64,000 nt of DNA. Source: Macrostomum lignano. Lineage: Eukaryota. The stretch is from contig NIVC01001993.1 of the NCBI GenBank assembly GCA_002269645.1, positions 62,001-126,000 of the forward strand, in the 5' to 3' direction. Both the position numbers and the translations under genes were made by a program. Below the pieces are notes generated by a model. It searched no databases, was not told where the DNA came from, and saw only the letters and a list, made by a program, of their open reading frames with translations. Below are positions 1 through 59,382 of the stretch, piece by piece (the first letter of the stretch is position 1; each line of letters opens with the position of its first letter).

Positions 1-3000
1 AGTTCCAGAAATGATAATCCGCTTTGAGCGCAACACAGGGGCAGCTCGACCGCTTCGCCTTCGGTTTCGACGGAGACTGCTACCGCCATGCCTTAGTGCA
101 AATAGTCTTGGAACTCGACTGACTATGCGCTTCACAATGCGGCGGCTTTTCGTTGATGTTCGAGTAATCTTTGATCGACTAATCAGCTTCCTGCGCAACA
201 CTCGTTTCGTGAAGCGTCGCTTCTTAAGAACAAGCCGTCGGACCTTGCGCTCCTGCCGACGCGTCTTTCTGCGCACTGAACTTATTCGACGGCGAAGACG
301 TTGCTTCCGATTGGAGATTCTACGAATTCGGGTCTTTAGGACGCGCCTTCGACGGCGAAGACGTTGCTTCCGATTGGAGATTCTACGAATTCGGGTCTTT
401 AGGACGCGCCTTCGACGGCGAAGACGTTGCTTCCGATTGGAGATTCTACGAATTCGGGTCTTTAGGACGCGCCTTCGACGGCGAAGACGTTGCTTCCGAT
501 TGGAGATTCTACGAATTCGGGTCTTTAGGACGCGCCTTCGACGGCGAAGACGTTGCTTCCAATTGGAGATTCTACGAATTCGGGTCTTTAGCTGGACGCG
601 CCTTCGACGGCGAAGACGTTGCTTCCGATTGGAGATTCTACGAATTCGGGTCTTTAGGACGCGCCTTCGACGGCGAAGACGTTGCTTCCGATTGGAGATT
701 CTACGAATTCGGGTCTTTAGGACGCGCCTTCGACGGCGAAGACGTTGCTTCCGATTGGAGATTCTACGAATTCGGGTCTTTAGGACGCGCCTTCGACGGC
801 GAAGACGTTGCTTCCGGTTGGAGATTCTACGAATTCGGGTCTTTAGCTGGACGCGCCTTCTTTTATACTTCACAATTCGTGAAGTACAGGTCGATAGTTT
901 GTAAGTCAGTCGCTTGATACCTGGTACCAGTATTGATTCGGCTGATCCTGTTTATTATCACAACTTTACTCTTTGTCTTCGAGGACAAGAGTCTTCGCAC
1001 TATTAACTTTTTCCTCTTCAATTGTTTGAGTCGCTCGATGAGATTCTTCGTTTTTTATCGGCTCTCCTGATGCACCGCCTCATTCGACGTCTCCTGGCCT
1101 TGATTCTGCGGATTCTTCGCTTTAGTTGAACGCTGCGTCGTCCAGTGACAAGAACTCGGTGTCTGCTGGCCAGCACTCTGACTTTAGCACGTGCGATTCT
1201 CTTATATATTTTCTTGATTTGTCTCACAGAACGTTTTTTGGCGATTTTTCTGTTAGTAGCAATCATTTTTTTGCTTTTTTCGTCGCTTTCCTTCCTTGTT
1301 TGAGATGATTACCAAGCTGTTTCGTTCTGCTCAGGTACAAAACGCGCTTGGTCAGTCGGATCTTCGCCTGTCGCACTGCGTAGCGCAAGACCCTTGCATT
1401 AGTGGCATTTTACTTTACGATTCGCCTCTGAAATCGTTTCAGCAGCGTGTTAAAACAGACTTTTCTTCTCTGAGTCTTCTTCTTGAGCATTAGCACCCGT
1501 TTCTTGAGTCGCTGTCGCCTGCTCGTAATGCGGCGAATCCTTGCCTTCAACTGTATGTTTCTTCTAGACACTCTCTGAAGCCGTCTTGTATACCTGGCGA
1601 TTTGTCGGGACACCAGATTTGTCTTTCTTTTATTGGGGGTTAGAATGCGCACCGACATTCTAGATTTCTTCTTCTGAATAGTTCCTAATTTGAGCAGAGT
1701 TAGGCGCTTAATAAGAAGTGCTCGCTTATTGCTGATTTTTGCCATGTACTTTTTAACAGTTGCTCTTCTTTGAGTGATGCGTTGAATACTGCGCCTCAGA
1801 TATCGCGTCTGTCTCTTAAGGCGACCAACTCGTCGCTTAGTGACGAGAATTCTTCGAATTATGCGCTCTACTCTTTTGTTAACATTCTTCAACTCTTTTG
1901 CTGCACGCTTGGCTATCTGTCTCAGCTTTCTGCTCTTGCCGATCAGAACAAATGGCTTCTTTATGACCTTCTTTCGCCGGTAAATTCTCCTACCTGCCCT
2001 TGATGTAACCTTCAAATTGTTTTTCTCAATGCGTTCATTGTCTTTTTACCACTAAGCTTCCATTGGATATTCCTGACTAAAATCCTCTTATACAAACGGC
2101 TCACAGTTCGATCTTGTCTAACAATTCTGCGCTGGATTATACGCGCTCTGGCCCTCAAGACTCTGCGCCTGCGAATGGCTCTATTGATGCGTCTTCTCAG
2201 CCGAATTCTTCGCACGCGCAGCCGTCGAATGCGCCGACCGCAAACGGATATTTTCCTCACAATTTGTCTGAAAGCATTTTTTGGTCCTCGTTTTGTCTGG
2301 ACTCGTTTCAGCTGCTTCAACAGCTTTCTGCGACAGATTTTTATCACCGTTACTCGCCGTTTCAGAACGCGAGCGCGATGCGTAATTTTTTTGACACGTC
2401 GCTTCAACACAATTCAGCGTTTCTGAATTCGAAGGATTCTACTTCGGTTGACAAGCTTTCTCCGGGCAGCGCTGGTGACTCTCTTGGCCAGTCTGTGGAA
2501 TGTCTTAACCACTCTAGATACTGTTCGCCTCCTGTGCATACCAGTCAGCCTTCGAGTGACAACAACTCGGCGAGAGCGGCGCCGTCCTTTTGAAGCCGTT
2601 CTTCTTCTGCGCTTGGATTGAACTAGCTTGGTTTTACGCCTCAGCACTCGGCTAGATTGTCTTTCAACCCGGAAAAAGGTTCTGCGACTGACAAGTTTTC
2701 GTTTAATCACGCCTCTAGTAAATCTCCGCTTTTTTCTGTTCAGCTTTCTGAACGTTTTAAGCTGACGTCGAGCCTTTCTTCGCAAAATCGAGCACCGTTT
2801 CCTTAGCGTTTGTCGACGGATAGAGAATTTAATAATTCTCTGCTTTATTCTGACTTTTCTTTGCTTCAAATGGAAGATATTTTTTGTGCACTTCGTAATG
2901 CGTTTTGCCAGCTGGCGCAAGCGCCTATCAATTCGAACAGTCTTACGCGTGACGTTCTCGATAACTGATCCCTTCCTCATGTTTTTGATGATAGCTTTTT

Positions 3001-4958
3001 TGCGTTTGAGCTTCTGCATCCGTTGAATCAATCGCGAGCGCCTGGCCCTGACCAGGGTAATTCGTCGTTTCAACCGTCGCCTCTTCGAGATGATCCTCCT
3101 CAAACGGCGTCTCAGAGAACGTCTACGCCTTCGAATGCGTCGAACAGTGCGCCTCTGCTTCAAACTGATGAGTAGTGCTCTCTTGGCTTTGACAACCAGG
3201 CGCTGAACTTTTTTAATCACTCTTGTACGGCTGACTCTCCGGCTCTTCCGTTGCGCTCGGTGTCGATTTACTTTTGTTCGTCGCCTTCGACTGAGACGCC
3301 TTTTTACTTCTGGACGACGACGTCTACTAATTTTTCAAATCTTCTTATTAGCTTGCGTCTTGTCTGTTTTGCCACCCTCAACTTAGAAATTTGCCTGATT
3401 TTTTTGCCCCGTTTCGACGGTCGACCAGATTTTGTATACCCACGGATCCGGTTTTTCTTCTTGATGAGTTGCCTTCGCTGTCTCAGCACTCTTCGACGGT
3501 GCAGTCGCCAACGCTTGCTGGTTGTTACGGGCCTAATGCGCCTTCTGGGTTGGTATCTAGTACGCCTTCTTAGAAGTCTGAGAACCGGTCGTCGGCTTTT
3601 CAAAATTCGCCTAACAATTCGTCTAATCTGTCTGTTGTACTGTCTACCTCTCCTACTGCCACTCCGGTGCTTTACTTGGCGTAGAATCCTTCTCAGCCTT
3701 CTTCGTAGAGGTTTTCGATAACGCCGAATCAAGCTGCGGACAATTTTACGGCTTCTTCCGCGCCGAACATTGCCTACCCGACTTTGGAAGTGTCTCACAA
3801 GCGCTTTGATTTTGCGCCGTAGTACATGACGTCTTCCACGACCCCTGCACCACTTGTGAATTATCAGTCTACGGAGTTGACGGTCAACCTGAGTAACTAC
3901 GTAACGCCGGGTCTTTCTCTTCTGCTGTCTCAATCTTCTGTCCATCTCTCTTCTCACTTTCCTTTGATATTTCCTCAAAATTCGTCTGGTTATTTGGTCG
4001 ACTCGAGGAGACCTCAGCCGTCTCAGGTCTCGTCTTAGTCTTTGGCATTTGCAGATGGTCTTTCCGTGAATGAACGGCCTTAGCCTGATTGGTTTTCTAG
4101 CGATTCTCTCCGCCTTCTTTGAGATGATACCTTTTCTGAAGAAGGCCTTCTGCACTAAGCGAATCCTTCGATTCGACAGAGGCTTCACTTTCAGCTTTCG
4201 CATAACCTTTCGCTGATACCTCTTCGTAACTTTTCTGAGCTTCCTTTTAAACAACTTCCTCACCTTTTGCACACGGCGCTTAAATCTCGAAATTCGGCGT
4301 CGAATTCTGCGCTGGTGCCGGGTTCTCTTCTCCGCCAGCTGCTGGCGACGAAGCTGCAGCTTCAAGAGGAGCAGTTTCGTGTCGTATTGCGCTTTGTAGT
4401 ACCTGCGGGCAGCCTCCATGATTTTTCGTTTGTTGATGATGCACGCCTGCGACTGTGAAGATTCTGCAAATCAAGCCGATGGTTCGAGCACACTATAGTT
4501 CGTATAAAAAAAGCATTTGAATTGACAACTACCGATGAACTGAACCCTGAACAAACTCTTTAATTGACAAGTTGGTTCTTCAATCCATCTTGCATGGAAG
4601 CGAATGATTTTTAACAAGAATGATACTACTTAAACAGACTACTGAATACGTCACATGAGCATTTGGTATAATTGTGTTTGCGATGGTGTATGCAGATTAT
4701 GCAGCGAAGAATTCAAAGCAATGCAAAGAAAACCCGGTCCCGATTTACTCGATCGATTTGCATCCTTTGGCTTCAGTTATTGGTCACATGTACACAGTAA
4801 CTTGGTTATTAAGATTGGATATTTTTGGACTAATCACCAAATATAATCATATTTAGGTTGTACTTACTCAATTCGGGTGCTTTCACGCTGGCACCGGCAG
4901 CAAAAGTGGCTGCTCCGACGCAGAGCACCAACAATAACAGCAGCGATTGGACTTGCAT
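1..4958 (-). CDS. Giant secreted Arg/Lys-rich (polycationic) protein, adhesive-protein ap1-like KR region; 3'-partial and frame-disrupted in this sequence
   Basis: Exon 1 4958-4868 reads MQVQSLLLLLVLCVGAATFAAGASVKAPEL (signal peptide) followed by A|GTAAGT (phase 1). The acceptor TTTGCAG| before 4463 restores frame: K-SSQSQACIINKRKI-MEAARRYY, joining ORF 3304..4419. ORFs 3304..4419, 2414..3220, 2012..2410, 1410..2015 and 1018..1266, plus an unlisted open minus frame from about 925 to 1, form one continuous R/K-rich polypeptide of about 1500 codons (about 41 R+K in the first 100 aa of ORF 3304..4419, counted by hand). It is broken by frameshifts near 3333, 2020-2047, 1266, 1053 and about 930, and by stops at 2414-2416 (TGA) and 1410-1412 (TAA). 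Confidence 0.8.
287..860 (-). repeat. Coding 63-bp tandem repeat, about 9 copies (21-aa unit RRRVLKTRIRRISNRKQRLRR)
   Basis: Unit starts on the + strand at 287, 350, 413, 476, 539, 605, 668, 731, 794. The only length variants are +3 nt (VQLK), so frame is preserved. Confidence 0.9.
4868..4958 (-). CDS. Signal-peptide exon 1 of the KR-rich gene
   Basis: ATG at 4958-4956, hydrophobic core LLLLLVLCVGAA, small-residue cleavage region, consensus GTAAGT donor at 4867-4862. Not in the ORF track (too short). Confidence 0.8.
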
Positions 4959-15405: not shown

Positions 15406-18400
15406 ATGGATGCTCGAGTGCTCTCTATTCAAAGTCATGTTGTTCATGGTTTTGCTGGCAATCGAAGTGCAATTTTCCCTTTGCAAGTAAGCTTTTTATT
15501 AGTTTGTTTTTTAGTTGTATGAGTTCTTATTTGTGCCTTATTAATTAGTTAATTTAAGCATTTTGGCCATTTGTTAGGTTTTAGGCTTTGATGTGGACTT
15601 TATCAATACTGTGCAATTCTCTAACCACACAGGTAAGCTTGCTTTAGTCATGCTGCAATTTGTTTTGCCACCAAATCCTTGATTAAATTTCTATTATTTT
15701 ATAGCTTATCCAGTGTTCAAAGGAGACCGACTGTCCACAGACCAGCTGAAGGAGTTGTACAGTGCTCTGGCTGAGAACAGCATTGATAATTACAGCTATG
15801 TGCTGACAGGTAGGAAACCCCAGGTTTCCATTAGTTTCATGCATGTTGCGATTTAGGGATGCATTATTTTTTGTGTACGAATTTCTCCACTCCAGGCTTC
15901 TGTTTCTCGGCTGATCTGCTTAAAGAAATTCTGGAAATTGTTCGACACCAGAAGAAGAAAAATCCAAAGCTGCTGTACTGTAAGATGGGTCTCTACATTT
16001 AATAAAAGAAAATTATGCTAAGCTACTTATTAAGTAGTAATAAATGATGATTAGTTTAATGCCGTTTCAGTTTGCGACCCTGTGCTCGGCGACAATGGCA
16101 AGTTTGTAAGCGAATGGCGCTACTAAACTCTTATTTTTAGTTTTTTGTTTTTACTAGTTCCTGTTTAGTTATTAGGGTAATTTTTACAAACGCGAAATTT
16201 CACATGGTTGTAGACAGTCAACTTCATAAGCTTCTAAAATTTACTAGTAGTTCGAAAATTCGTGAAATTGTAAAATTTCGAGCCTGCGAGGTTTAAAGCT
16301 TGTGAAGATTCCAGCTTGTGGAGATTAAAGCTTGTGAAGTTTTGAGTTTGTGAAGATTCGAGCTTATGAATATTCGATCTTGTGAAGATTCGAGCTTGTG
16401 AAGTTTCGAGTTTGTGAATATTCGAGCTTGTGAATATTCGAACTTGTGAATATTCGATCTTGTGAATATTCGATATTGTGAATATTCGATCTTGTGAATA
16501 TTAGATATTGTGAATATTCGATCTTGTGAATATTCGATCTTGTGGACCCCCTGTGGCCCTGTTATATTAATGCGCATGTGATTTGTTTATCATAAACATT
16601 GCAGTACGTGCCAGAGGAACTAGTGCCAGCCTTTAAAGAGGCCTTGGAAGTGGCCGATTTTCTAACGCCGAACCAATTCGAATTGCAGTAAGATTAATTT
16701 TGTTAAACTTGTTCGCTTGCTATGCAGCTTTGGAAGCAATTAGTGTTAACTGGGTGAGATCTTAGCGCCGCAGATGAGATCTTAGCGGCGCAGGTGAGAT
16801 CTTAGCACCAAAGATGAGATCTTAGCGCCAACGGTGAGATCTTAGCATTAAAGATGGGATCTTAGCGCCGCAGATGAGATCTTAGCGCCAACGGTGAGAT
16901 CTTAGCATTTAAGATGGGATCTTAGCATTAAAGATGAAATCTTAGCGCCGCAGATGAGATCTTAGCGCCAACGGTGAGATCTTAGCATTTAAGATGGGAT
17001 CTTAGCATTAAAGATGAAATCTTAGCGCCGCAGATGAGATCTTAGCGCCAAAGTTGAGACCTTAGCGCTGCAGGTAAGACGTTAGCTTGTATGCCTTTAA
17101 GGCAAGAGTATATTAAAATGACAATTCTGTATGGAAATTTAAAACAGTTAACGAAAGAAGCAATACAATTAAATTTTTACTACTTCACATGAGTAGTGAA
17201 CTTCACATTTTTGAAGTTTTTCAATTTTTTCTAATTTCTTTCGCCACCCCGCCAATGCAGACAACTGTCCGGTTTGCCCGTCACAGACGAGCCTTCCGCT
17301 CTGGCGGCCATCGACACCCTGATGCGTTCTCACGCGAATTTGAAATTCGTCTGTCTGACCAGTACAGACTTTGGCGACGCTAACGGCATTCTGCACGGTC
17401 TGGCCGTGGCTCGCGGAAGCGGTGAGGGTAGTGTACAGCGGCTGCGCTACCAGATGCCTCGCCTCGCCGAGTCATTCGTTGGCACCGGGGATCTGTTCAC
17501 TGCGCTGTTGCTAGCTTGGAATCATAAGCTGCCGGATAATCCCAAGCTGGTGCTGGAGAGAGTCATATCTACTGTGTACACTGTGCTGCTGGCTACCGTT
17601 GACTACATTAAGGTGAGTCCGCGGGTTTACGACTGAAATCTGTGTCTCAGTGGCTGGAGTGACATCTGCCTGTCAGTAGCTGGAGAGAGTGACATCTGTG
17701 TGTCAGTAGCTGGAGAGAGTGACATCTGTGTGTCAGTAGCTGGAGAGAGTGGCATCTGTGTGTCAGTAGCTGAAGAGAGTGACTTCTGTGTGTCAGTAGC
17801 TGAAGAGAGTGACATCTGTGTGTCAGTAGCTGAAGAGAGTGACTTCTGTTTGTCAGTAGCTGGAGAGAGTGACATCTGTGTGTCAGTACCAACAGAGAGT
17901 GACATCTGTGTGTCAGTAGCTGAAGAGAGTGACTTCTGTTTGTCAGTAGCTGGAGAGAGTGACATCTGTGTGTCAGTAGCTGGAGAGAGTGACATCTGCC
18001 TGTCAGTACCAACAGAGAGTGACATCTGTGTGTCAGTAGCTGGAGAGAGTGACATCTGTGTGTCAGTAGCTGGAGAGAGTGACATCTGTGTGTCAGTAGC
18101 TGGAGAGAGTGGCATCTGTGTGTCAGTAGCTGAAGAGAGTGACTTCTGTTTGTCAGTAGCTGGAGAGAGTGACATCTGTGTGTCAGTAGCTGAAGAGAGT
18201 GACTTCTGTTTGTCAGTAGCTGGAGAGAGTGACATCTGTGTGTCAGTAGCTGGGGAGAGTGACATCTGCCTGTCAGTACCAACAGAGAGTGACATCTGTG
18301 TGTCAGTAGCTGGAGAGAGTGACATCTGTGTGTCAGTAGCTGGAGAGAGTGGCATCTGTGTGTCAGTAGCTAAAGAGAGTGACTTCTGTGTGTCAGTAGC

Positions 18401-18985: not shown

Positions 18986-19470
18986 CCGATTATCGCCATC
19001 TAGTTCAAGTTGATTGAACATTCCCAGATGCTGGAGAGCCGCTTGTTGAGTCGGTGTAAATTTTTAATTCGTTTTTTTTGTTACAACGAGCTACTACTAG
19101 TAGTTAAAATGATTATAACTGTCTTTTAAGCAAACTTTTGTTGATTTTTATTCATTCAATTTTCTATCTATTTGCTAGCATTTTGTATTGCGATTGTTTT
19201 TTTATTTTTTTCTGTTTCTATTCAGTTCATTCGTATCACGCTTTATAAAAAAAACTGGTATTACTTTTAGTAGTATGAAGTATTGTAGAAGTGCGTATTT
19301 TTATAGTTTTAATTTAAAAAAATTACTGGTCCGATCATGTTTTCTATTACTCAACCTTTTTTCAAAAGCTTCTCTTTATGGGTCAACAAATTTTGATAAT
19401 GAAATTTTGCTGCATTGCATTATAAAAAATGTACTTGCGCCACTTGCTTCATTTTAAACTCTAAAATATT

Positions 19471-22400
19471 TTAAGAATGGCCCTGCAATCCTTTAAGAGT
19501 GGCCCTGCAATCCTTTAAGAATGGCCCTGCAATCCTTTAAGAATGGCCCTGCAATCCTTTAAGAATCGCCCTGCAATCCTTTAAGAATGGCTCTGCAATC
19601 CTTTAAGAATGGCTCTGCAATCCTTTAAGAGTGGCCCTGCAATCCTTTAAGAATGGCCCTGCAATCCTTTAAGAATGGCCCTGCAATCCTTTAAGAATGG
19701 CCCTGCGATCCTTTAAGAATGGCCCTGCAATCCTTTAAGAATGGCCCTGCAATCCTTTAAGAGTGGCCCTGAATCCTTTAAGAGTGGCCCTGCAATCCTT
19801 TAAGAGTGGCCCTGCAATCCTTTAAGAATGGCCCTGCAATCCTTTAAGAGTGGCCCTGCAATCCTTTAAGAGTGGCCCTGCAATCCTTTAAGAATGGCCC
19901 TGCAATCCTTTAAGAGTGGCCCTGCAGTCCTTTAAGAATGACCCTGCAATCCTTTAAGAATGGCCCTGCAATCCTTTAAGAATGGCCCTGCAATCCTTTA
20001 AGAGTGGCCCTGAATCCTTTAAGAGTGGCCCTGCGATCCTTTAAGAGTGGCCCTGCAATCCTTTAAGAATGGCCCTGCAATCCTTTAAGAGTGGCCCTGA
20101 ATCCTTTAAGAGTGGCCCTGCGATCCTTTAAGAATGACCCTGCAATCCTTTAAGAATGGCCCTGCAATCCTTTAAGAATGGCCCTGCAATCCTTTAAGAA
20201 TGGCCCTGCAATCCTTTAAGAATGGCCCTGCGATCCTTTAAGAGTGGCCCTGCAATCCTTTAAGAATCGCCCTGCAGTCCTTTAAGAATGGCCCTGCGAT
20301 CCTTTTAAGAATGGCCCTGCAATCCTTTAAGAATGGCCCTGCGATCCTTTAAGAGTGGCCCTGCAATCCTTTAAGAATGGCCCTGCAATCCTTTAAGAGT
20401 GGCCCCGCAATCCTTTAAGAATGGCCCTGCAATCCTTTAAGAATGGCCCTGCAATCCTTTAAGAATGGCCCCGCAATCCTTTAAGAGTGGCCCTGCAATC
20501 CTTTAAGAATGGCCCTGCAATCCTTTAAGAATGGCCCTGCAATCCTTTAAGAATGGCCCTGCAATCCTTTAAGAATGGCCCCGCAATCCTTTAAGAGTGG
20601 CCCTGCAATCCTTTAAGAATGGCCCTGCAATCCTTTAAGAATGGCCCTGCAATCCTTTAAGAATGGCCCTGCAATCCTTTAAGAATGGCCCTGCAATCCT
20701 TTAAGAATGGCCCTGCAATCCTTTAAGAAAGAATGGCCCTGCAATCCTTTAAGAATGGCCCTGCAATCCTTTAAGAATGGCCCTGCAATCCTTTAAGAAT
20801 GGCCCCGCAATCCTTTAAGAATGGCCCTGCAATCCTTTAAGAATGGCCCTGCAATCCTTTAAGAAAGAATGGCCCTGCAATCCTTTAAGAATGGCCCTGC
20901 AATCCTTTAAGAATCGCCCTGCAATCCTTTAAGAAAGAATGGCCCTACAATCCTTTAAGAATGGCCCTGCAATCCTTTAAGAAAGAATGGCCCTGCAATC
21001 CTTTAAGAATGGCCCTGCAATCCTTTAAGAATGGCCCTGCAATCCTTTGAGAATGGCCCTGCAATCCTTTAAGAATGGCCCTGCAATCCTTTAAGAATTG
21101 CCCTGCAATCCTTTAAGAATGGCCCTGCAATCCTTTAAGAATGGCCCTGCAATCCTTTAAGAATGGCCCTGCAATCCTTTAAGAATGGCCCTGCAATCCT
21201 TTAAGAGTGGCCCTGCAATCCTTTAAGAATGGCCCTGCAATCCTTTAAGAATGGCCCTGCAATCCTTTGAGAATGGCCCTGCAATCCTTTAAGAATGGCC
21301 CTGCAATCCTTTAAGAATGGCCCTGCAATCCTTTAAGAATGGCCCTGCAATCCTTTAAGAGTGGCCCTGCAATCCTTTAAGAATGGCCCTGCAATCCTTT
21401 AAGAAAGAATGGCCCTGCAATCCTTTAAGAATGGCCCTGCAATCCTTTAAGAATGGCCCTGCAATCCTTTAAGAATGGCCCTGCAATCCTTTAAGAATGG
21501 CCCTGCAATCCTTTAAGAATGGCCCTGCGATCCTTTAAGAATGGCCCCACAATCCTTTAAGAAAGAATGGCCCTGCAATCCTTTAAGAATGGCCCTGCAA
21601 TCCTTTAAGAAAGAATGGCCCTGCAATCCTTTAAGAATGGCCCTGCAATCCTTTAAGAATGGCCCTGCAATCCTTTAAGAATGGCCCTGCAATCCTTTAA
21701 GAAAGAATGGCCCTGCAATCCTTTAAGAATGGCCCTGCAATCCTTTAAGAATGGCCCTGCAATCCTTTAAGAATGGCCCTGCAATCCTTTAAGAGTGGCC
21801 CTGCAATCCTTTAAGAATGGCCCTGCAATCCTTTAAGAATGGCCCTGCAATCCTTTAAGAAAGAATGGCCCTGCAATCCTTTAAGAATGGCCCTGCAATC
21901 CTTTAAGAATGGCCCTGCAATCCTTTAAGAATGGCCCTGCAATCCTTTAAGAATGGCCCCGCAATCCTTTAAGAATGGCCCTGCGATCCTTTAAGAATGG
22001 CCCCGCAATCTTTTAAGAATGGCCCTGCAATCCTTTAAGAATGGCCCCGCAATCCTTTAAGAATGGCCCCGCAATCCTTTAAGAAAGAATGGCCCTGCAA
22101 TCCTTTAAGAATGGCCCCGCAATCCTTTAAGAAAGAATGGCCCTGCAATCCTTTAAGAATGGCCCTGCAATCCTTTAAGAATGGCCCTGCAATCCTTTAA
22201 GAATGGCCCTGCAATCCTTTAAGAAAGAATGGCCCTGCAATCCTTTAAGAATGGCCCCGCAATCTTTTAAGAATGGCCCTGCAATCCTTTAAGAATGGCC
22301 CCGCAATCCTTTAAGAATGGCCCCGCAATCCTTTAAGAAAGAATGGCCCTGCAATCCTTTAAGAATGGCCCCGCAATCCTTTAAGAAAGAATGGCCCTGC

Positions 22401-22491
22401 AATCCTTTAAGAATGGCCCTGCAATCCTTTAAGAATGGCCCTGCAATCCTTTAAGAATGGCCCTGCAATCCTTTAAGAAAGAATGGCCCTG
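19471..22491 (+). repeat. 22-bp satellite, left array, about 137 copies
   Basis: AAGAATGGCCCTGCAATCCTTT; +4-nt (AAAG) variants appear from about 20730 inward. Confidence 0.97.
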
Positions 22492-23446
22492 CTTGAAGAT
22501 TTTCTTTTTGCCTCGTCACCAGTCGCTCCTATTTAATCTCGCAAGTCCTTATTATTTGCCTTAATTTACGAGTATAATAAACAGTAGCGCATGTAAAAAG
22601 GCTTGCTCATATATTTTAGCCACTTTCATTCATACTCTGACTGCTTAGTTTCGTACGTTTGAATTTTTATACATACCAATTCATCCTATCGCTCAGCTCC
22701 CTGCATAGGCTCTGCCATCTAGTTTTTTGTCTTCTTAACATCCGACTGCTCCAATGGAAGAGTTTTACCGCCAAATTTATTCAGTTTGCAAAGCTGGCTA
22801 CGCGCCTCTGTTAATATTTGCCTTTTTGCCAAAATGAAACGCTATAAATGTTGACTTGATGCGTACATACTACTTAAAGCCCATAAAATCAATATCAGCG
22901 TCTGTTTGGAGTTTTTCGGATAAATTAAGGATTAGTTTAGTGAGCTGGCTGCTGCATAAGTGATTTTTGGTTTTATCGACCGGTGCCTCCGGTGCTTCCA
23001 GTGTCCGCGGCTTTTGTTTACCTGTAGCTGATTCTACAGATAAGCTAGTTTGGCGAATTCAATTTACTGTAGTGTTTCAAATACATCAGCATGCGCAACA
23101 AAATTTATATTGAAATCGCCTGTTGCCGATCAATGAATTGCTGTTCAATCTCACAAATCCGTCATTTTGATTGTCTAATTTTTACGATTGAAGAAAATAA
23201 TGATGAAAGAAACAGTTTATTTCTGGTGAAGCTATTGCTTCTTAAATTTTTAAAATACTATACATTCCTTTTATTATTTATATTTATAACATGCAAATTT
23301 TCAGTGCAAAACGAGAAGATTTCGATAGTCAAATGCAGATAATATTTACAGATGAAATACAAAATACGAAATGTTTTAACATACTGTATATGCATCTAGC
23401 AGTCAGTGATTATACAGTCATTGACAGAGAAAAGCGCACATGATGC

Positions 23447-25363
23447 TCAGTCGACCTCCTCAACGGTGGGTCCTCCAGCTCGCTGATGTCCAGGCTGAGG
23501 CTGACCAGACTGCTGCTGCTGCTGATGAAGCTTGGCCATGATTGGCGAGCAGCGGCTGCTGAGTTGCTGCTGCTGGTGGGCAATCTCGTCCTTCTCGGCA
23601 GTCTGGTTGTTCTCCAGCCAGGAAATCACTTGCTCGCAGGCGGCCACCACCTCGGCGGAGTCCTTCTCGCCCAGCTTGTCCTTGCAGTCGTTGGCAGCCT
23701 GCTTGTACTGGAAGGCGAGCGACTCGAGCTGGTTGCGGGCCGCCAGGCGCTCGCGGTGCCGCTCGTCCTCCTCGCGGAACTTCTCCGCATCCCGCACCAT
23801 CCTGTCGATCTCGTCCTTCGAGAGGCGGCCCTTGTCGTTCGTGATCGTGATCTTCTCCTCCTTGCTGGTGCTCTTGTCTTTCGCCGACACCACCAGGATT
23901 CCGTTGGCGTCAACGTCGAAGGTCACCTCGATCTGAGGGACTCCGCGCGGCGCTGGCGGGATCCCGTCCAGGTTGAACCGGCCCAGCAGGTGGTTGTCTC
24001 TGGTGAGCGCTCGCTCGCCCTCGAACACCTGCACCGTGACGCCGCTCTGGTTGTCCGAGTAGGTGGTGAACGTCTGCGTCGCCTTGGTCGGGATGCGGCT
24101 GTTCCGCTCGACAATCTTGGTCATCACCCCGCCGGCGGTCTCGATGCCGAGAGACAGCGGCGCCACATCCAGCAGCAGCAGGTCGTCGATCTTGTCGTCC
24201 TTCACGCCAGTCAGCACCGCAGCCTGCACGGCAGCTCCGTAGGCGACCGCCTCGTCCGGGTTGATCGACTTGTTCAGCGTCCGACCGCCCATGAATTCTT
24301 GCAGCAACTTCTGCACCCTCGGGATCCGGGTTGATCCGCCAACCAGCACGATCTCGTTGATGTTGCTCTTGTCCATCTTGGCGTCTCTCAGCGCTCGCTC
24401 CACCGGCTCCATCGTCTGGCGAAACAGGTCGGCGCACAGCTCCTCGAATCGAGCCCTGGTGACGCTCGTGTAAAAATCGATGCCCTCGAACAGCGAGTCA
24501 ATCTCGATGCTCGCCTGTGCCGAGCTGCTCAGCGTTCGCTTCGCTCGCTCAGCCGCAGTCCGAAGGCGTCTCACAGCCCGAGCGTTGCCGCTCATGTCCT
24601 TGCGGTACTTGCGCTTGAACTCTTGCATCAGGTGCTCAACCAGACGATGATCAAAGTCCTCGCCGCCGAGGTGGGTGTCGCCGGCGGTTGCGCGCACCTC
24701 GAACATGCTGCCCTCCGACACTGTCAGGATGGACACGTCGAACGTGCCGCCTCCCAGGTCAAAGATGAGAATGTTCTTCTCACCCTGCAGGTTCTTGTCC
24801 AGACCGTAGGCCAGTGCCGCAGCAGTCGGCTCGTTCACGATGCGCAGCACGTTCAGTCCGGCAATCGCCCCGGCATCCTTCGTTGCCTGTCGCTGACTGT
24901 CGTTGAAGTAGGCCGGCACTGTGATCACCGCGTCAGACACCTTCTCGCCGAGGTAGGCCTCCGCCGTCTCCTTCATCTTGGTGAGAACCATGGCGGAGAT
25001 CTCCTCCGGGTAGAAGCTGCGCCTCTCGCCCATGTACTGCACCTCAATCTTGGGTCGGCCTCCGTCGTTCGTCACCTTGAATGGCCACAGCTTCATGTCC
25101 CTCTGCACCGTCTCGTCTCCGAACTTTCGTCCGATCAGACGCTTCGCGTCAAACACTGTGTTGTCCGGATTCATCGCCACCTGGTTCTTTGCAGCGTCGC
25201 CTACCAGCCTCTCCGTGTCCGTGAAGGCCACGTAGCTGGGAGTGGTTCGGTTGCCCTGGTCATTGGCAATGATCTCCACTTTGCCTGCCTGGAACACGCC
25301 AACGCACGAGTACGTGGTGCCCAGGTCAATGCCGATTGCAGGACCGTTGTTGCTCTTACCCAT
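23447..25363 (-). CDS. hsp70: Heat shock protein 70, cytosolic, intronless, heat-inducible type, 638 aa
   Basis: [32 protein letters not shown] signatures; C-terminal GPTVEEVD; no introns. Confidence 0.99.
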
Positions 25364-25520
25364 GTTGTCGATCGATTAATTCGCACTTGCTTGATATACG
25401 AGTAGTAGCGTAGGCTGATGCGTCTGTTGCCTTGATGGCTTGCTTGGCTTTGCTGTTCGTTTCGTTCGCCTTGCGATCCGATTTCAATTCTTGCCTCCAA
25501 TTCTGGGCCGGGTGCTTCTC

Positions 25521-25616
25521 TTTTATAGACTCCGGCCCGTTTCTAGAAGTTTCCCGCACCATCCTCCGCGAATGCGCCGCGAGCTATTTTTAGCTCGTTC
25601 TGGAAATTTCTCGAAA
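25521..25616 (-). promoter_or_regulatory. hsp70 promoter of the left copy: two heat-shock elements and a TATA box
   Basis: Mirror image of 27069-27164. Confidence 0.9.
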
Positions 25617-26050
25617 AAAGAATTGCTTGACAAATTTTACCATTTGCGTCTATTTCGCCTACTTTAAGTAGAAAGTAACAAACGTGTAGTCTAATACAAA
25701 CATATTCTTACAAACATATTTACAATGTTAAAACCTAAAGGGATCAAGAAATTCTGTGGAAAATGGGATTAATGAATATTAGCGATAGTTTTGGTTGCGA
25801 AGAATTTATTTTGTTATTCAATATTTATTTGTTAAAACGATCAGGTCTTTCAGATTAACTGATTCTGGAAATCGGCGATATGTATAGAAATAGAACAAGC
25901 ATTGCAAGCACAAAACAAAAGTCAGAACAGTGCTATGTTTTAAAGTCGACTCAATCTTCTGAAGTGAAACAAAAGGAAAATACAAACAGCTTGTCAGTTG
26001 AATAATTTTTTAGTTAATGCTTATTAAGTGCACAAAACTAAATGGCAAAA

Positions 26051-26170
26051 AAGACAACAGCATTTGGTATTCCCAGGCGGTCACCCATCCAAGTACTAAC
26101 CAAACCCAACGTTGCTTAACTTCGGTGATCAGACGAGAACCGGTGTTTTCAACGTGGTATGGCCGTTGCC
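26051..26170 (-). rRNA. 5S rRNA: 5S rRNA, left copy
   Basis: Reverse complement of 26515-26634. Confidence 0.95.
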
Positions 26171-26514
26171 AATTACCGAGAGCACTCAACTTCAATTTAT
26201 ACTTCGCTACCGCCGCATTGTGTCAGCAGGCAATACGGTAACAAGTAATATGGCCCATTTTGTATCGACCAGGAGCCAATAGCCTCCTCGCCATAGCCTC
26301 CTGTCATTATCTGATTGTCGATTCAACGCAGAGAGAAATATCAATTAAAGATTGGTCAGTTGGTCAGGATTGGATATTCATCATCCCGATAAGGCGAGGA
26401 GGCTATTGGCTCCTGGTCGATACAAAATGGGCCATATTACTTGTTACCGTATTGCCTGCTGACACAATGCGGCGGTAGCGAAGTATAAATTGAAGTTGAG
26501 TGCTCTCGGTAATT

Positions 26515-26634
26515 GGCAACGGCCATACCACGTTGAAAACACCGGTTCTCGTCTGATCACCGAAGTTAAGCAACGTTGGGTTTGGTTAGTACTTGGATGG
26601 GTGACCGCCTGGGAATACCAAATGCTGTTGTCTT
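26515..26634 (+). rRNA. 5S rRNA: 5S rRNA, right copy
   Basis: GGCAACGGCCATACCACGTTGAAAACACCGGTTCTCGTCTGATCACCGAAGTTAAGC...TTAGTACTTGGATGGGTGACCGCCTGGGAATACCAAATGCTGTTGTCTT. Helix I (GGCAAC/GTTGTC), ACGTTG/CAACGT and TTTGGT/ACCAAA all pair. TATAAAT at about -30; T6 Pol III terminator at 26633-26638. Confidence 0.95.
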
Positions 26635-27068
26635 TTTTGCCATTTAGTTTTGTGCACTTAATAAGCATTAACTAAAAAATTATTCAACTGACAAGCTGTT
26701 TGTATTTTCCTTTTGTTTCACTTCAGAAGATTGAGTCGACTTTAAAACATAGCACTGTTCTGACTTTTGTTTTGTGCTTGCAATGCTTGTTCTATTTCTA
26801 TACATATCGCCGATTTCCAGAATCAGTTAATCTGAAAGACCTGATCGTTTTAACAAATAAATATTGAATAACAAAATAAATTCTTCGCAACCAAAACTAT
26901 CGCTAATATTCATTAATCCCATTTTCCACAGAATTTCTTGATCCCTTTAGGTTTTAACATTGTAAATATGTTTGTAAGAATATGTTTGTATTAGACTACA
27001 CGTTTGTTACTTTCTACTTAAAGTAGGCGAAATAGACGCAAATGGTAAAATTTGTCAAGCAATTCTTT

Positions 27069-27164
27069 TTTCGAGAAATTTCCAGAACGAGCTAAAAATA
27101 GCTCGCGGCGCATTCGCGGAGGATGGTGCGGGAAACTTCTAGAAACGGGCCGGAGTCTATAAAA
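27069..27164 (+). promoter_or_regulatory. hsp70 promoter of the right copy: HSE 27069-27088, HSE 27131-27145, TATAAAA 27158-27164
   Basis: tTTCgaGAAatTTCcaGAAc (4 nGAAn units) and gGAAacTTCtaGAAa (3 units) directly upstream of the TATA box. Confidence 0.9.
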
Positions 27165-27321
27165 GAGAAGCACCCGGCCCAGAATTGGAGGCAAGAATTG
27201 AAATCGGATCGCAAGGCGAACGAAACGAACAGCAAAGCCAAGCAAGCCATCAAGGCAACAGACGCATCAGCCTACGCTACTACTCGTATATCAAGCAAGT
27301 GCGAATTAATCGATCGACAAC

Positions 27322-29238
27322 ATGGGTAAGAGCAACAACGGTCCTGCAATCGGCATTGACCTGGGCACCACGTACTCGTGCGTTGGCGTGTTCCAGGCAG
27401 GCAAAGTGGAGATCATTGCCAATGACCAGGGCAACCGAACCACTCCCAGCTACGTGGCCTTCACGGACACGGAGAGGCTGGTAGGCGACGCTGCAAAGAA
27501 CCAGGTGGCGATGAATCCGGACAACACAGTGTTTGACGCGAAGCGTCTGATCGGACGAAAGTTCGGAGACGAGACGGTGCAGAGGGACATGAAGCTGTGG
27601 CCATTCAAGGTGACGAACGACGGAGGCCGACCCAAGATTGAGGTGCAGTACATGGGCGAGAGGCGCAGCTTCTACCCGGAGGAGATCTCCGCCATGGTTC
27701 TCACCAAGATGAAGGAGACGGCGGAGGCCTACCTCGGCGAGAAGGTGTCTGACGCGGTGATCACAGTGCCGGCCTACTTCAACGACAGTCAGCGACAGGC
27801 AACGAAGGATGCCGGGGCGATTGCCGGACTGAACGTGCTGCGCATCGTGAACGAGCCGACTGCTGCGGCACTGGCCTACGGTCTGGACAAGAACCTGCAG
27901 GGTGAGAAGAACATTCTCATCTTTGACCTGGGAGGCGGCACGTTCGACGTGTCCATCCTGACAGTGTCGGAGGGCAGCATGTTCGAGGTGCGCGCAACCG
28001 CCGGCGACACCCACCTCGGCGGCGAGGACTTTGATCATCGTCTGGTTGAGCACCTGATGCAAGAGTTCAAGCGCAAGTACCGCAAGGACATGAGCGGCAA
28101 CGCTCGGGCTGTGAGACGCCTTCGGACTGCGGCTGAGCGAGCGAAGCGAACGCTGAGCAGCTCGGCACAGGCGAGCATCGAGATTGACTCGCTGTTCGAG
28201 GGCATCGATTTTTACACGAGCGTCACCAGGGCTCGATTCGAGGAGCTGTGCGCCGACCTGTTTCGCCAGACGATGGAGCCGGTGGAGCGAGCGCTGAGAG
28301 ACGCCAAGATGGACAAGAGCAACATCAACGAGATCGTGCTGGTTGGCGGATCAACCCGGATCCCGAGGGTGCAGAAGTTGCTGCAAGAATTCATGGGCGG
28401 TCGGACGCTGAACAAGTCGATCAACCCGGACGAGGCGGTCGCCTACGGAGCTGCCGTGCAGGCTGCGGTGCTGACTGGCGTGAAGGACGACAAGATCGAC
28501 GACCTGCTGCTGCTGGATGTGGCGCCGCTGTCTCTCGGCATCGAGACCGCCGGCGGGGTGATGACCAAGATTGTCGAGCGGAACAGCCGCATCCCGACCA
28601 AGGCGACGCAGACGTTCACCACCTACTCGGACAACCAGAGCGGCGTCACGGTGCAGGTGTTCGAGGGCGAGCGAGCGCTCACCAGAGACAACCACCTGCT
28701 GGGCCGGTTCAACCTGGACGGGATCCCGCCAGCGCCGCGCGGAGTCCCTCAGATCGAGGTGACCTTCGACGTTGACGCCAACGGAATCCTGGTGGTGTCG
28801 GCGAAAGACAAGAGCACCAGCAAGGAGGAGAAGATCACGATCACGAACGACAAGGGCCGCCTCTCGAAGGACGAGATCGACAGGATGGTGCGGGATGCGG
28901 AGAAGTTCCGCGAGGAGGACGAGCGGCACCGCGAGCGCCTGGCGGCCCGCAACCAGCTCGAGTCGCTCGCCTTCCAGTACAAGCAGGCTGCCAACGACTG
29001 CAAGGACAAGCTGGGCGAGAAGGACTCCGCCGAGGTGGTGGCCGCCTGCGAGCAAGTGATTTCCTGGCTGGAGAACAACCAGACTGCCGAGAAGGACGAG
29101 ATTGCCCACCAGCAGCAGCAACTCAGCAGCCGCTGCTCGCCAATCATGGCCAAGCTTCATCAGCAGCAGCAGCAGTCTGGTCAGCCTCAGCCTGGACATC
29201 AGCGAGCTGGAGGACCCACCGTTGAGGAGGTCGACTGA
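27322..29238 (+). CDS. hsp70: Heat shock protein 70, cytosolic, intronless, heat-inducible type, 638 aa (protein identical to the left copy)
   Basis: Same signatures and EEVD terminus. Confidence 0.99.
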
Positions 29239-30203
29239 GCATCATGTGCGCTTTTCTCTGTCAATGACTGTATAATCACTGACTGCTAGATGCATATACA
29301 GTATGTTAAAACATTTCGTATTTTGTATTTCATCTGTAAATATTATCTGCATTTGACTATCGAAATCTTCTCGTTTTGCACTGAAAATTTGCATGTTATA
29401 AATATAAATAATAAAAGGAATGTATAGTATTTTAAAAATTTAAGAAGCAATAGCTTCACCAGAAATAAACTGTTTCTTTCATCATTATTTTCTTCAATCG
29501 TAAAAATTAGACAATCAAAATGACGGATTTGTGAGATTGAACAGCAATTCATTGATCGGCAACAGGCGATTTCAATATAAATTTTGTTGCGCATGCTGAT
29601 GTATTTGAAACACTACAGTAAATTGAATTCGCCAAACTAGCTTATCTGTAGAATCAGCTACAGGTAAACAAAAGCCGCGGACACTGGAAGCACCGGAGGC
29701 ACCGGTCGATAAAACCAAAAATCACTTATGCAGCAGCCAGCTCACTAAACTAATCCTTAATTTATCCGAAAAACTCCAAACAGACGCTGATATTGATTTT
29801 ATGGGCTTTAAGTAGTATGTACGCATCAAGTCAACATTTATAGCGTTTCATTTTGGCAAAAAGGCAAATATTAACAGAGGCGCGTAGCCAGCTTTGCAAA
29901 CTGAATAAATTTGGCGGTAAAACTCTTCCATTGGAGCAGTCGGATGTTAAGAAGACAAAAAACTAGATGGCAGAGCCTATGCAGGGAGCTGAGCGATAGG
30001 ATGAATTGGTATGTATAAAAATTCAAACCTACGAAACTAAGCAGTCAGAGTATGAATGAAAGTGGCTAAAATATATGAGCAAGCCTTTTTACATGCGCTA
30101 CTGTTTATTATACTCGTAAATTAAGGCAAATAATAAGGACTTGCAAGATTAAATAGGAGCGACTGGTGACGAGGCAAAGAGAAAATCTTCAAGGAGATCC
30201 TCA

Positions 30204-33200
30204 AGGATTGCAGGGCCATTCTTAAAGGATTGCAGGGCCATTCTTAAAGGATTGCAGGGCCATTCTTAAAGGATTGCAGGGCCATTCTTAAAGGATTGCA
30301 GGGCCATTCTTAAAGGATTGCAGGGCCACTCTTAAAGGATTGCAGGGCCATTCTTAAAGGATTGCAAGGCTATTCTTAAATGATTGCAGGGCCATTCTTA
30401 AAGGATTGCAGGGCCATTCTTAAAGGACTGCAGTGCCATTCTTAAAGGATTGCAAGGCTATTCTTAAAGGATTGCAGGGCCATTCTTAAAGGATTGCAGG
30501 GCCATTCTTAAAGGACTGCAGGGCCATTCTTAAAGGATTGCAAGGCTATTCTTAAAGGATTGCAGGGCCATTCTTAAAGGATTGCAGGGCGATTCTTAAA
30601 GGACTGCAGGGCCATTCTTAAAGGATTGCAAGGCCATTCTTAAAGGATTGCAGGGCAATTCTTAAAGGATTGCAGGGCCACTCTTAAAGGATTGCAGGGC
30701 GATTCTTAAAGGATTGCAGGGCCATTCTTAAAAGGATTGCAGGGCCACTCTTAAAGGATTGCAGGGCCATTCTTAAAGGATTGCAGGGCCATTCTTAAAG
30801 GATTGCAGGGCAATTCTTAAAGGATTGCAGGGCCACTCTTAAAGGATTGCAGGGCGATTCTTAAAGGATTGCAGGGTCATTCTTAAAGGATTGCAGGGCC
30901 ATTCTTAAAGGATTGCAGACCATTCTTAAAAGGATTGCAGGGCCACTCTTAAAGGATTGCAGGGCCATTCTTAAAGGATTGCAGGGCCACTCTTAAAGGA
31001 TTGCAGGGCCATTCTTAAAGGATTGTAGGGCCATTCTTAAAGGATTGCAGGGCCATTCTTAAAGGATTGCAGACCATTCTTAAAGGATTGCAGGGCCATT
31101 CTTAAAGGATTGCAGGGCTATTCTTAAAGGATTGCAGGGCCATTCTTAAAGGATTGCAGGGCCACTCTTAAAGGATTGCAGGGCCATTCTTAAAAGGATT
31201 GCAGGGCCATTCTTAAAGGATTGCAGGGCGATTCTTAAAGGATTGCAGGGCCATTCTTAAAGGATTGCAGGGCCATTCTTAAAGGATTGCAGGGCGATTC
31301 TTAAAGGATTGCAGGGCCATTCTTAAAGGATTGCAGGGCCACTTTTAAAGGATTGCAGGGCGATTCTTAAAGGATTGCAGGGCCATTCTTAAAGGATTGT
31401 AGGGCCATTCTTAAAGGATTGCAGGGTCATTCTTAAAGGATTGCAGACCATTCTTAAAGGATTGCAGGGCCACTCTTAAAGGATTGCAGGGCCATTCTTA
31501 AAGGATTGCAGGGCGATTCTTAAAGGATTGCAGGGCCATTCTTAAAGGATTGCAGGGCCATTCTAAAAGGATTGCAGGGCGATTCTTAAAGGATTGCAGG
31601 GCCATTCTTAAAGGATTGCAGGGCCATTCTTAAAGGATTGCAGGGCCACTCTTAAAGGATTGCAGGGCCATTCTTAAAAGATTGCAGGGCCATTCTTAAA
31701 GGATTGCAGGGCCACTCTTAAAGGATTGCAGGGTGATTCTTAAAGGATTGCAGGGCCATTCTTAAAAGGATTGCAGGGCCACTCTTAAAGGATTGCAGGG
31801 CCATTCTTAAAGGATTGCAGGGCCATTCTTAAAGGATTGCAGGGCAATTCTTAAAGGATTGCAGGGCCACTCTTAAAGGATTGCAGGGCGATTCTTAAAG
31901 GATTGCAGGGTCATTCTTAAAGGATTGCAGGGCCATTCTTAAAGGATTGCAGACCATTCTTAAAAGGATTGCAGGGCCACTCTTAAAGGATTGCAGGGCC
32001 ATTCTTAAAGGATTGCAGGGCCACTCTTAAAGGATTGCAGGGCCATTCTTAAAGGATTGTAGGGCCATTCTTAAAGGATTGCAGGGCCATTCTTAAAGGA
32101 TTGCAGACCATTCTTAAAGGATTGCAGGGCCATTCTTAAAGGATTGCAGGGCTATTCTTAAAGGATTGCAGGGCCATTCTTAAAGGATTGCAGGGCCACT
32201 CTTAAAGGATTGCAGGGCCATTCTTAAAAGGATTGCAGGGCCATTCTTAAAGGATTGCAGGGCGATTCTTAAAGGATTGCAGGGCCATTCTTAAAGGATT
32301 GCAGGGCCATTCTTAAAGGATTGCAGGGCCATTCTTAAAGGATTGCAGGGCCATTCTTAAATGATTGCAGGGCGATTCTTAAAGGATTGCAGGGCCATTC
32401 TTAAAGGATTGCAGGGCCACTTTTAAAGGATTGCAGGGCGATTCTTAAAGGATTGCAGGGCCATTCTTAAAGGATTGTAGGGCCATTCTTAAAGGATTGC
32501 AGGGTCATTCTTAAAGGATTGCAGACCATTCTTAAAGGATTGCAGGGCCACTCTTAAAGGATTGCAGGGCCATTCTTAAAGGATTGCAGGGCGATTCTTA
32601 AAGGATTGCAGGGCCATTCTTAAAGGATTGCAGGGCCATTCTAAAAGGATTGCAGGGCGATTCTTAAAGGATTGCAGGGCCATTCTTAAAGGATTGCAGG
32701 GCCATTCTTAAAGGATTGCAGGGCCACTCTTAAAGGATTGCAGGGCCATTCTTAAAAGATTGCAGGGCCATTCTTAAAGGATTGCAGGGCCACTCTTAAA
32801 GGATTGCAGGGCCATTCTTAAAGGATTGCAGGGCGATTCTTAAAGGATTGCAGGGCCATTCTTAAAAGGATTGCAGGGCCACTCTTAAAGGATTGCAGGG
32901 CCATTCTTAAAGGATTGCAGGGCCACTCTTAAAGGATTGCAGGGCCATTCTTAAAGGATTGCAGGGCCACTCTTAAAGGATTGCAGGGCCATTTTTAAAG
33001 GATTGCAGGGCGATTCTTAAAGGATTGCAGGGCCATTCTTAAAGGATTGCAGACCATTCTTAAAGGATTGCAGGGCCACTCTTAAAGGATTGCAGGGCCA
33101 TTCTTAAAGGATTGCAGGGCCACTTTTAAAGGATTGCAGGGCGATTCTTAAAGGATTGCAGGGCCATTCTTAAAGGATTGCAGGGCCACTTTTAAAGGAT

Positions 33201-34128
33201 TGCAGGGCGATTCTTAAAGGATTGCAGGGCCATTCTTAAAGGATTGCAGGGTCATTCTTAAAGGATTGCAGACCATTCTTAAAGGATTGCAGGGCCATTC
33301 TTAAGGGATTGCAGGGCCATTCTTAAAGGATTGCAGACCATTCTTAAAGGATTGCAGGGCCACTCTTAAAGGATTGCAGGGCCATTCTTAAAGGATTGCA
33401 GGGCCACTTTTAAAGGATTGCAGGGCGATTCTTAAAGGATTGCAGGGCCATTCTTAAAGGATTGCAGGGCCACTTTTAAAGGATTGCAGGGCGATTCTTA
33501 AAGGATTGCAGGGCCATTCTTAAAGGATTGTAGGGCCATTCTTAAAGGATTGCAGGGTCATTCTTAAAGGATTGCAGACCATTCTTAAAGGATTGCAGGG
33601 CCATTCTTAAAGGATTGCAGGGCCATTCTTAAAGGATTGAAGGGCGATTCTTAAAGGATTGCAGGGCCATTCTTAAAGGATTGCAGGGCGATTCTTAAAG
33701 GATTGCAGGGCCATTCTTAAAGGATTGCAGGGCCATTCTTAAAGGATTGCAGGGCCACTCTTAAAGGATTGCAGGGCCATTCTTAAAGGATTGCAGGGCC
33801 ACTTTTAAAGGATTGCAGGGCGATTCTTAAAGGATTGCAGGGCCATTCTTAAAGGATTGCAGACCATTCTTAAAGGATTGCAGACCATTCTTAAAGGATT
33901 GCAGGGCCATTCTTAAAGGATTGCAGGGCCATTCTTAAAAGGATTGCAGGGCCATTCTTAAAGGATTGCAGGGCCAATTGCAGGACCAAGACCAAGACCA
34001 AGCCCACTCTTAAAAGGATTGCAGGGCCACTCTTAAAGGATTGCAGAGCCATTCTTTCTTAAAGGATTGCAGGGCGATTCTTAAAGGATTGCAGGGCCAT
34101 TCTTAAAGGATTGTAGGGCCACTCTTAA
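30204..34128 (-). repeat. 22-bp satellite, right array in inverted orientation, about 178 copies
   Basis: AAAGGATTGCAGGGCCATTCTT is the reverse complement of the left unit; private variants include GCAGACC (2-nt deletion), GTAGGG and GGCGATT. Confidence 0.97.

Positions 34129-34799: not shown

Positions 34800-37653
<2,854 letters not shown>

Positions 37654-44914: not shown

Positions 44915-59382
<14,468 letters not shown>

Follow-up and report, generated by a model that had tools for sequence, protein, structure and literature searches.

Heat-shock genes arranged as self-homogenising palindromes have been described in nematodes and flies. In Caenorhabditis elegans, the identical and divergently transcribed hsp70 genes F44E5.4 and F44E5.5 lie in 2,207-bp arms that are 99.7% identical and separated by a 126-bp spacer; this palindrome has been conserved for about 100 million years and arm-to-arm gene conversion was inferred for it (Zhao et al. 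2007, PMC1803023). The C. elegans hsp16-1/hsp16-48 locus, as summarised in later papers, forms a perfect inverted repeat of 3.8 kb around a unique 414-416-bp spacer (Russnak & Candido 1985, via PMC1803023 and PMC3966223), and its fully diverged flanks are read in those papers as a sign of conversion rather than recency. In Diptera, the basic unit is considered to be an inverted pair of hsp70 genes that conversion has homogenised (PMC3071340, PMC6995229, both of which cite Bettencourt & Feder 2002), with examples at Drosophila 87A7 (Hsp70Aa/Ab), in D. subobscura and in Stratiomyidae, and the homogeneity of such pairs decays away from the coding sequence (CDS). Here we analysed a 64,000-nucleotide stretch of the flatworm Macrostomum lignano genome (GenBank assembly GCA_002269645.1, contig NIVC01001993.1, positions 62,001 to 126,000 of the forward strand), hereafter the window, in whose own numbering all positions are given. 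It contains an hsp70 palindrome that carries a 5S rRNA gene in each arm and ends on both sides in arrays of a 22-bp satellite. With a probability of roughly 0.68, the locus as a whole is best explained as a genuine inverted duplication whose arms have been homogenised by conversion, holding an hsp70 pair with the 5S genes as passengers.

The palindrome spanned 7,708 bp in total and was the dominant inverted-repeat pair found at 17-37 kb; the coordinates of its parts are given in Table 1. A first-pass annotation had reported a 7.7-kb palindrome with two identical divergent hsp70 genes, two divergent 5S genes and satellite arrays at both ends, and all four elements were present within about 40 bp of where it had placed them. 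The two hsp70 open reading frames (ORFs) were indeed identical. The arms themselves were near-identical, not strictly identical: base-by-base comparison revealed five mismatches (99.87% identity), which were substitutions at 22491, 22506, 22540, 22656 and 26293, and the satellite arrays were not mirror images of each other. The 94-nt centre was not self-complementary (12 of 47 inward positions pair), arm identity ended within about 10 bp of the satellites, and the flanks beyond the palindrome showed no relation to the arms or to one another. No part of an arm was found to recur elsewhere in the window. The locus thus combines inverted arms more than 99% identical, a non-duplicated spacer and unrelated flanks, as a natural palindrome does.

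Each arm carried an intact hsp70 gene. The two ORFs were uninterrupted, matched Pfam HSP70 with 850.9 bits and stood head-to-head, their 5′ ends facing each other 1.96 kb apart. Both copies were of the inducible type, being intronless, with heat-shock elements (HSEs) and a TATA box upstream and a cytosolic EEVD end. Six of the seven perfect three-unit HSEs that a regex scan detected in the whole window fell inside the palindrome, and AATAAA signals were found at 29410 and 29464, 170-230 nt past the stop codon of the right gene. Canonical HSEs have been experimentally shown to be required for heat induction of other M. lignano promoters, those of long terminal repeats (PMC12801592). Judged from these sequence features, the pair would be heat-inducible through promoters of the heat-shock factor (HSF) type, and the locus appears to be a two-copy, divergently transcribed heat-shock hsp70 pair of the same design as C. 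elegans F44E5.4/F44E5.5 and Drosophila 87A.

The M. lignano locus shares with F44E5.4/F44E5.5 the head-to-head identical hsp70 genes, the near-perfect inverted repeat and the short unique spacer, whereas its arms are longer (3,807 nt), its genes lie 1.96 kb instead of 446 bp apart, and each of its arms holds a 5S gene and ends in a satellite array. With C. elegans hsp16 it has in common a heat-shock module built as an inverted repeat with a unique spacer, but the hsp16 locus contains two small-hsp genes per arm, no gene for RNA polymerase III (Pol III) and no satellite flanks. The analogy with the divergent hsp70 pairs of dipterans, drawn by the first-pass annotation, was apt: divergent, intronless, HSE-driven hsp70 genes are found in both. 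The flatworm pair belongs to a different phylum, its identity spans each 3.8-kb arm from end to end, 1 kb of 3′ flank and 2 kb of 5′ flank included, its arms embed 5S genes, and it has no demonstrated counterpart to the scs/scs′ boundaries of 87A. The primate sex-chromosome ampliconic palindromes, according to the account of Rozen et al. 2003 given in PMC1803023, also keep their arms more than 99.9% identical by arm-to-arm conversion around a unique spacer. Those palindromes carry testis genes, whereas the M. lignano one is small and autosomal or of as yet unassigned chromosomal location. Primate palindromes measure 9 kb to 1.45 Mb and have kilobase-scale spacers. The architecture of an hsp70 palindrome is therefore already known, and what is new here is the phylum, the longer arms and the intact Pol III 5S gene in each arm near the axis. 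The suggestion that the whole arrangement was unknown in the literature was correct for the embedded 5S genes and incorrect for hsp70 palindromes (C. elegans, PMC1803023; Diptera, PMC3071340).

Long-read libraries are known to fail by producing near-perfect palindromes, and redundancy has been described for the current M. lignano assemblies; both would favour an assembly or library artefact, either a fold-back chimeric read or an inverted mis-join of two hsp70 loci. Such an origin is extremely improbable, given that the junction consists of 94 unique nucleotides and is neither zero-length nor an adapter join, that the two flanks are unrelated, that the arrays are unmirrored and unequal in length and variant content, and that the arm mismatches are substitutions clustered at the edges. 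An independent, non-identical record argues in the same direction. The UniProt entry A0A1I8I9J3 (1,070 amino acids, named 'Secreted protein', three identical entries, UniRef100 n=3) mapped colinearly on one strand of the window: residues 1-459 correspond to 23486-24907, where they read the left hsp70 in antisense frames, residues 460-534 to 27102-27326, in the right promoter, and residues 535-1070 to 27334-29235, on the sense strand of the right hsp70. Because this model needs an inverted hsp70 upstream of a sense copy on one strand, the inverted pair did not arise as an artefact of the present assembly. It differed from the window at two residues, both in the antisense part and both caused by third-position synonymous transitions in the hsp70 frame, which indicates another haplotype, copy or assembly as its source, in which the genes likewise stand head-to-head. 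The inverted duplication is genuine in the M. lignano genome.

The proposal that the palindrome is self-correcting fitted the data, since the mismatches clustered at the arm edges and the flanking arrays had fully diverged in variant order. Specifically, four of the five mismatches were located in the outermost 170 nt (22491-22656; binomial P = 1.9e-5). Divergence was 2.35% in these 170 nt; at that rate the inner 3,636 nt should contain about 86 mismatches, but they contained none. Private monomer variants were present on both sides: the left array had 6 types in 36 copies and the right array 8 types in 32 copies. Mirror order was absent, with 25 of 130 monomers identical at the same index (0.19 versus 0.21 expected at random). 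Edge-clustered mismatches together with private variants spread through the arrays are the expected signature of a conversion that stops short of arrays lying out of register. These patterns point to arm-to-arm gene conversion as the process that probably keeps the arms alike.

The perfect identity of the inner 3,636 nt would also be seen in a very young inverted duplication, whose arms would be alike through too little mutation time and without any gene conversion. Minisatellite arrays reshuffle fast, so that unmirrored arrays alone demand little time, and recent duplications abound in the M. lignano genome (PMC5730564). Recency is nevertheless rather unlikely, because it does not fit an outer 170 nt that is 2.35% diverged next to an undiverged interior, and because several private point variants per array had to arise and then spread. 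Moreover, a second non-identical haplotype or copy has the same arrangement, and the analogous hsp70 and hsp16 palindromes of C. elegans are ancient despite arm identities of 99.7-100%.

Three points weigh against a converted and genuine duplication as a complete account. Conversion is argued from five mismatches together with array divergence, and sequence change in tandem arrays is far quicker than in unique DNA. Some of the edge mismatches may be consensus errors made beside the satellite. Finally, A0A1I8I9J3, as far as its sequence can be mapped, confirms the inverted hsp70 pair only and leaves the 5S genes, the spacer length and the satellites unproven in that record.

Under the preferred explanation of an inverted duplication with converted arms, the ancestral unit would have consisted of the 22-bp satellite, hsp70 and 5S, in this order, and would have been copied in reverse beside itself, most likely by fold-back or template-switch, leaving behind the 94-nt unique spacer. 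The outer breakpoint would lie inside the satellite, as is indicated by the unrelated flanks beyond the arrays, and the same satellite would consequently appear in opposite orientation on the two sides. The two arrays may since have changed independently of each other through slippage and unequal exchange, while arm-to-arm gene conversion would have held the 3.8-kb arms identical, its tracts petering out some 170 nt short of the arrays. In this way, conversion would keep both hsp70 copies and their promoters intact. Insertion of a cassette into a pre-existing array was also considered and was rejected, since the arrays would then share one orientation.

Table 1. Features of the palindrome and its surroundings in the window (HSE, heat-shock element; ORF, open reading frame; TRF, Tandem Repeats Finder).
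Feature	Coordinates	Strand	Description and source
Left 22-bp satellite array	19470-22479	-	Unit TTTAAGAATGGCCCTGCAATCC as read on the + strand; ~134 copies; TRF
Left palindrome arm	22489-26295		3,807 nt; inverted-repeat search and base-by-base comparison
Left hsp70	23447-25363	-	Intronless 638-aa ORF, C-terminal EEVD (GPTVEEVD)
Left hsp70 promoter	25520-25615	-	Mirror of the right promoter; regex scan and sequence read
Left hsp70 promoter elements	TATA 25520-25527; proximal HSE 25541-25553; distal HSE 25598-25615	-	Distal HSE of four units
Left 5S rRNA gene	26052-26170	-	TATA-like element ~30 nt upstream; T6 terminator
Central spacer	26296-26389		94 nt; unique, non-palindromic, between the arms
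Right palindrome arm	26390-30196		3,807 nt; inverted-repeat search and base-by-base comparison
Right 5S rRNA gene	26515-26633	+	TATAAA at 26484-26489 (-31 to -26); TTTTTT directly 3′
Right hsp70 promoter	27070-27165	+	Regex scan
Right distal HSE	27070-27087	+	TTCgaGAAatTTCcaGAA; four units
Right promoter motif	27092-27101 (mirror 25584-25593)	+	CTAAAAATAG; between the two HSEs
Right proximal HSE	27132-27144	+	GAAacTTCtaGAA; three units
Right hsp70 TATA element	27158-27165	+	TATAAAAG
Right hsp70	27322-29238	+	638-aa ORF, identical to the left copy
Right 22-bp satellite array	30203-33976, degenerate tail to ~34165	+	At least 172 copies; TRF
Pyridoxal-kinase (PDXK) exon	17235-17633		Left flank
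Ig-like ORF	34800-36323	+	Signal-peptide-like start; weak V-set Ig match

The satellite had been described as the same 22-bp repeat at both ends in opposite orientation, which the TRF analysis and a pattern search bore out. The unit gave 279 pattern matches in the window versus 0 expected by chance, all of them inside the two arrays, and every left copy lay on one strand and every right copy on the other. The arrays differed in length (3.0 kb on the left versus 3.9 kb on the right), and the private variants of the left one included a 26-bp unit with a TTCT insertion. On this 26-bp variant a local pattern of the DEDEELE type was built in the left array, whereas the right array showed higher-order structure at 31202-32280, where a block of about 49 monomers (about 1,078 bp) was tandemly duplicated. 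The opposite orientation of the two arrays argues against insertion of the cassette into an existing array and is accounted for by an inverted duplication with its outer breakpoint inside the array. Tandem arrays made up about 40% of the window; they were built from 26 or more unrelated units, had periods of 8-63 bp and were 0.2-3.9 kb long each, so that satellite flanks are the local norm; the genome-wide figure for tandem repeats in M. lignano is 15% (PMC5730564). The region may be subterminal or belong to an otherwise unusual part of a chromosome.

Both 5S genes were full length, covering model positions 1-120 of Rfam RF00001 with 116.5 bits versus a gathering threshold of 38. They were divergent, with 5′ ends 344 bp apart, and each was situated about 0.5 kb upstream of the TATA box of the hsp70 in its arm, and about 440 bp upstream of its distal HSE, pointing in the same direction as that hsp70. 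Among related metagenomic 5S copies, a T-run was found in 45 of 48 and a TATA-like element near -30 in 20 of 47. No sequence hallmark of a working Pol III gene is missing from the palindromic genes, which look functional and are predicted to be transcribed. Both primers of the published M. lignano 5S probe for fluorescence in situ hybridisation (FISH) matched the window 5S exactly (PMC5704211, PMC7013459), and the copy in the window may not differ from those in the array. An E-value scan of one arm against Rfam returned only the 5S gene and a chance match resembling a small nucleolar RNA (snoRNA), and tRNA genes were looked for and none found. In the spacer, a C/D-box snoRNA-like match to the archaeal family sR46 (26356-26387, minus strand) scored 20.8 bits versus a gathering threshold of 50 and was judged to be due to chance.

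The main 5S locus of M. lignano consists of tandem units of about 1.65 kb at the end of MLI2p, and its describers could not exclude a few dispersed 5S copies (PMC5704211). The palindromic pair is an example of this. It most likely goes back to a dispersed 5S gene that lay upstream of hsp70 by chance and was then duplicated together with it. In linked 5S ribosomal DNA (rDNA), 5S genes are joined to 45S rDNA or to histone, spliced-leader RNA or small nuclear RNA repeats (e.g. PMC3692318). The M. lignano genes resemble these in being physically joined to another conserved multi-copy gene, whereas linked units are tandemly reiterated and form the main 5S locus, and here a single palindromic pair lies off the main cluster. 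The window contained just two 5S genes in 64 kb, in inverted orientation, and not an array of the canonical or linked (L-type) kind. A transposon-borne or retroposed 5S was rejected, as the arm parts did not recur in the window, the TATA-like element and the terminator were kept, and there was no poly-A. Inverted 5S copies 1.3-2.5 kb apart were also observed in three unrelated eukaryotic metagenome contigs retrieved with the 5S core (L023, L036 and L044); these represent either a natural occurrence elsewhere or contig-end artefacts.

A literature search for 5S-hsp70 linkage found no relevant report, and a scan with a 30-nt 5S core found hsp70 beside a closely similar 5S at 0 of 45 metagenomic loci, on contigs that were short; none of these 45 loci matched the window 5S at 100%. 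A functional pairing of Pol III and RNA polymerase II (Pol II) genes at this locus is neither supported nor contradicted by these results. The first-pass annotation had proposed a functional cassette in which 5S (Pol III) and hsp70 (Pol II) are coupled on purpose while the satellites insulate, bound recombination or enable amplification. The presence of a complete 5S in each arm, about 440 bp upstream of the distal HSE and in the same orientation, and the halt of arm identity within about 10 bp of the satellites are in keeping with this idea. Chromatin barriers can be formed by Pol III genes and TFIIIC sites, and at Drosophila 87A the hsp70 pair has scs/scs′ as its boundaries. Against the cassette, only two copies were present, without any trace of further arms, and the term 'amplifiable' is not supported. 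Satellite arrays flanked almost everything in a window that is 40% tandem arrays, and an active recombination or insulating role of the 22-bp satellite is not supported; the arrays would at most be passive markers of the point where homology in register, and conversion with it, comes to an end. In addition, none of the 45 similar-5S loci, on their short contigs, carried hsp70, a second M. lignano group of hsp70 paralogues lies in a different context, and the main 5S cluster is found elsewhere as a 1.65-kb tandem unit. A purpose-built cassette is thus highly improbable. Human satellite III mimics HSF sites; in the 22-bp unit, the likeness to an HSF site was limited to TTTaaGAA, a two-unit site with one mismatch, once per unit.

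The 5S genes might alternatively be conserved working parts of the locus, which we consider very unlikely. In one version, 5S genes at the axis, occupied by TFIIIA, TFIIIC and Pol III, would hold a nucleosome-free insulated zone between two poised HSF promoters. In another, a replication-fork pause at 5S would have seeded the palindrome and would keep re-initiating arm-to-arm repair. If true, this idea predicts that hsp70-5S linkage is conserved across Macrostomum species. Passenger 5S genes in a homogenised inverted duplication remain the explanation that we favour.

The proteins nearest to the window Hsp70 were from M. lignano, and other phyla reached just 72-76% identity. UniProt A0A1I8I8J9 (M. 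lignano) was 99% identical, and its N-terminal extension is spurious, being a literal translation of window 27102-27326, that is, of the promoter and 5′ untranslated region (5′ UTR). Together with the exact 5S primer matches, these similarities mark the DNA as that of M. lignano, a flatworm and not an insect. The three next-closest proteins (84-85% identity) were encoded on contigs L001-L003, each 2-2.8 kb long. L001, a genomic contig of a related macrostomid whose Hsp70 is 85% identical, contained HSEs and a TATA box, and the promoter order HSE, GAGCTAAAAATAG, HSE, TATA was kept in it. The motif CTAAAAATAG, which we take to fit a MEF2/CArG-like consensus, was kept inside GAGCTAAAAATAG in this promoter (~178-187). 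L001 stops 423 bp upstream of the ATG and is too short to reach the expected 5S position. Neither the window Hsp70 nor A0A1I8I8J9 had an exact protein match in the contig index. The public M. lignano models of this hsp70 are artefacts: A0A1I8I9J3 fuses antisense frames, promoter and sense CDS across the palindrome, and in others (A0A1I8I8J9, A0A1I8HH09 and A0A1I8IHW4) the 5′ UTR is translated and parts of the CDS are skipped as false introns.

The palindrome lies in an intergenic region between a pyridoxal-kinase gene on the left and a gene for an immunoglobulin (Ig)-like membrane protein on the right. The Ig-like ORF stayed open through a 22-bp array at 35363-36078, read as a 22-amino-acid repeat (three units = 66 bp), which represents either a repeat-containing stalk or a coincidental open frame in an intron. 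Farther away, consecutive long ORFs at 1410-4419 (minus strand), extremely rich in Arg and Lys and without a Pfam match, adjoined a 63-bp array at 285-860; they could be a gene for a highly basic nuclear protein or a non-coding repeat. Towards the other end of the window, an SH3-domain exon was located at 59155-59391 (minus strand; Pfam SH3_1, E=3e-10), with poly-Q and acidic ORF segments upstream of it at 57051-58465 (minus strand), and these probably belong to one multi-exon gene.

Altogether, the locus would extend self-homogenising heat-shock palindromes from nematodes and flies to a third phylum, the Platyhelminthes, and this further example would strengthen the case for a repeated origin and persistence of the architecture. 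It also exposes the current UniProt and WormBase ParaSite models of this hsp70 as mis-fusions across the palindrome. As M. lignano is the one flatworm known for routine transgenesis, it is tractable for studying the stability of a palindrome with 3.8-kb arms and a 94-nt spacer, and the same tools would allow the importance of a Pol III gene beside a heat-shock promoter to be probed. The locus would in addition offer a compact native hsp70 promoter, predicted to be heat-inducible, for use in M. lignano.

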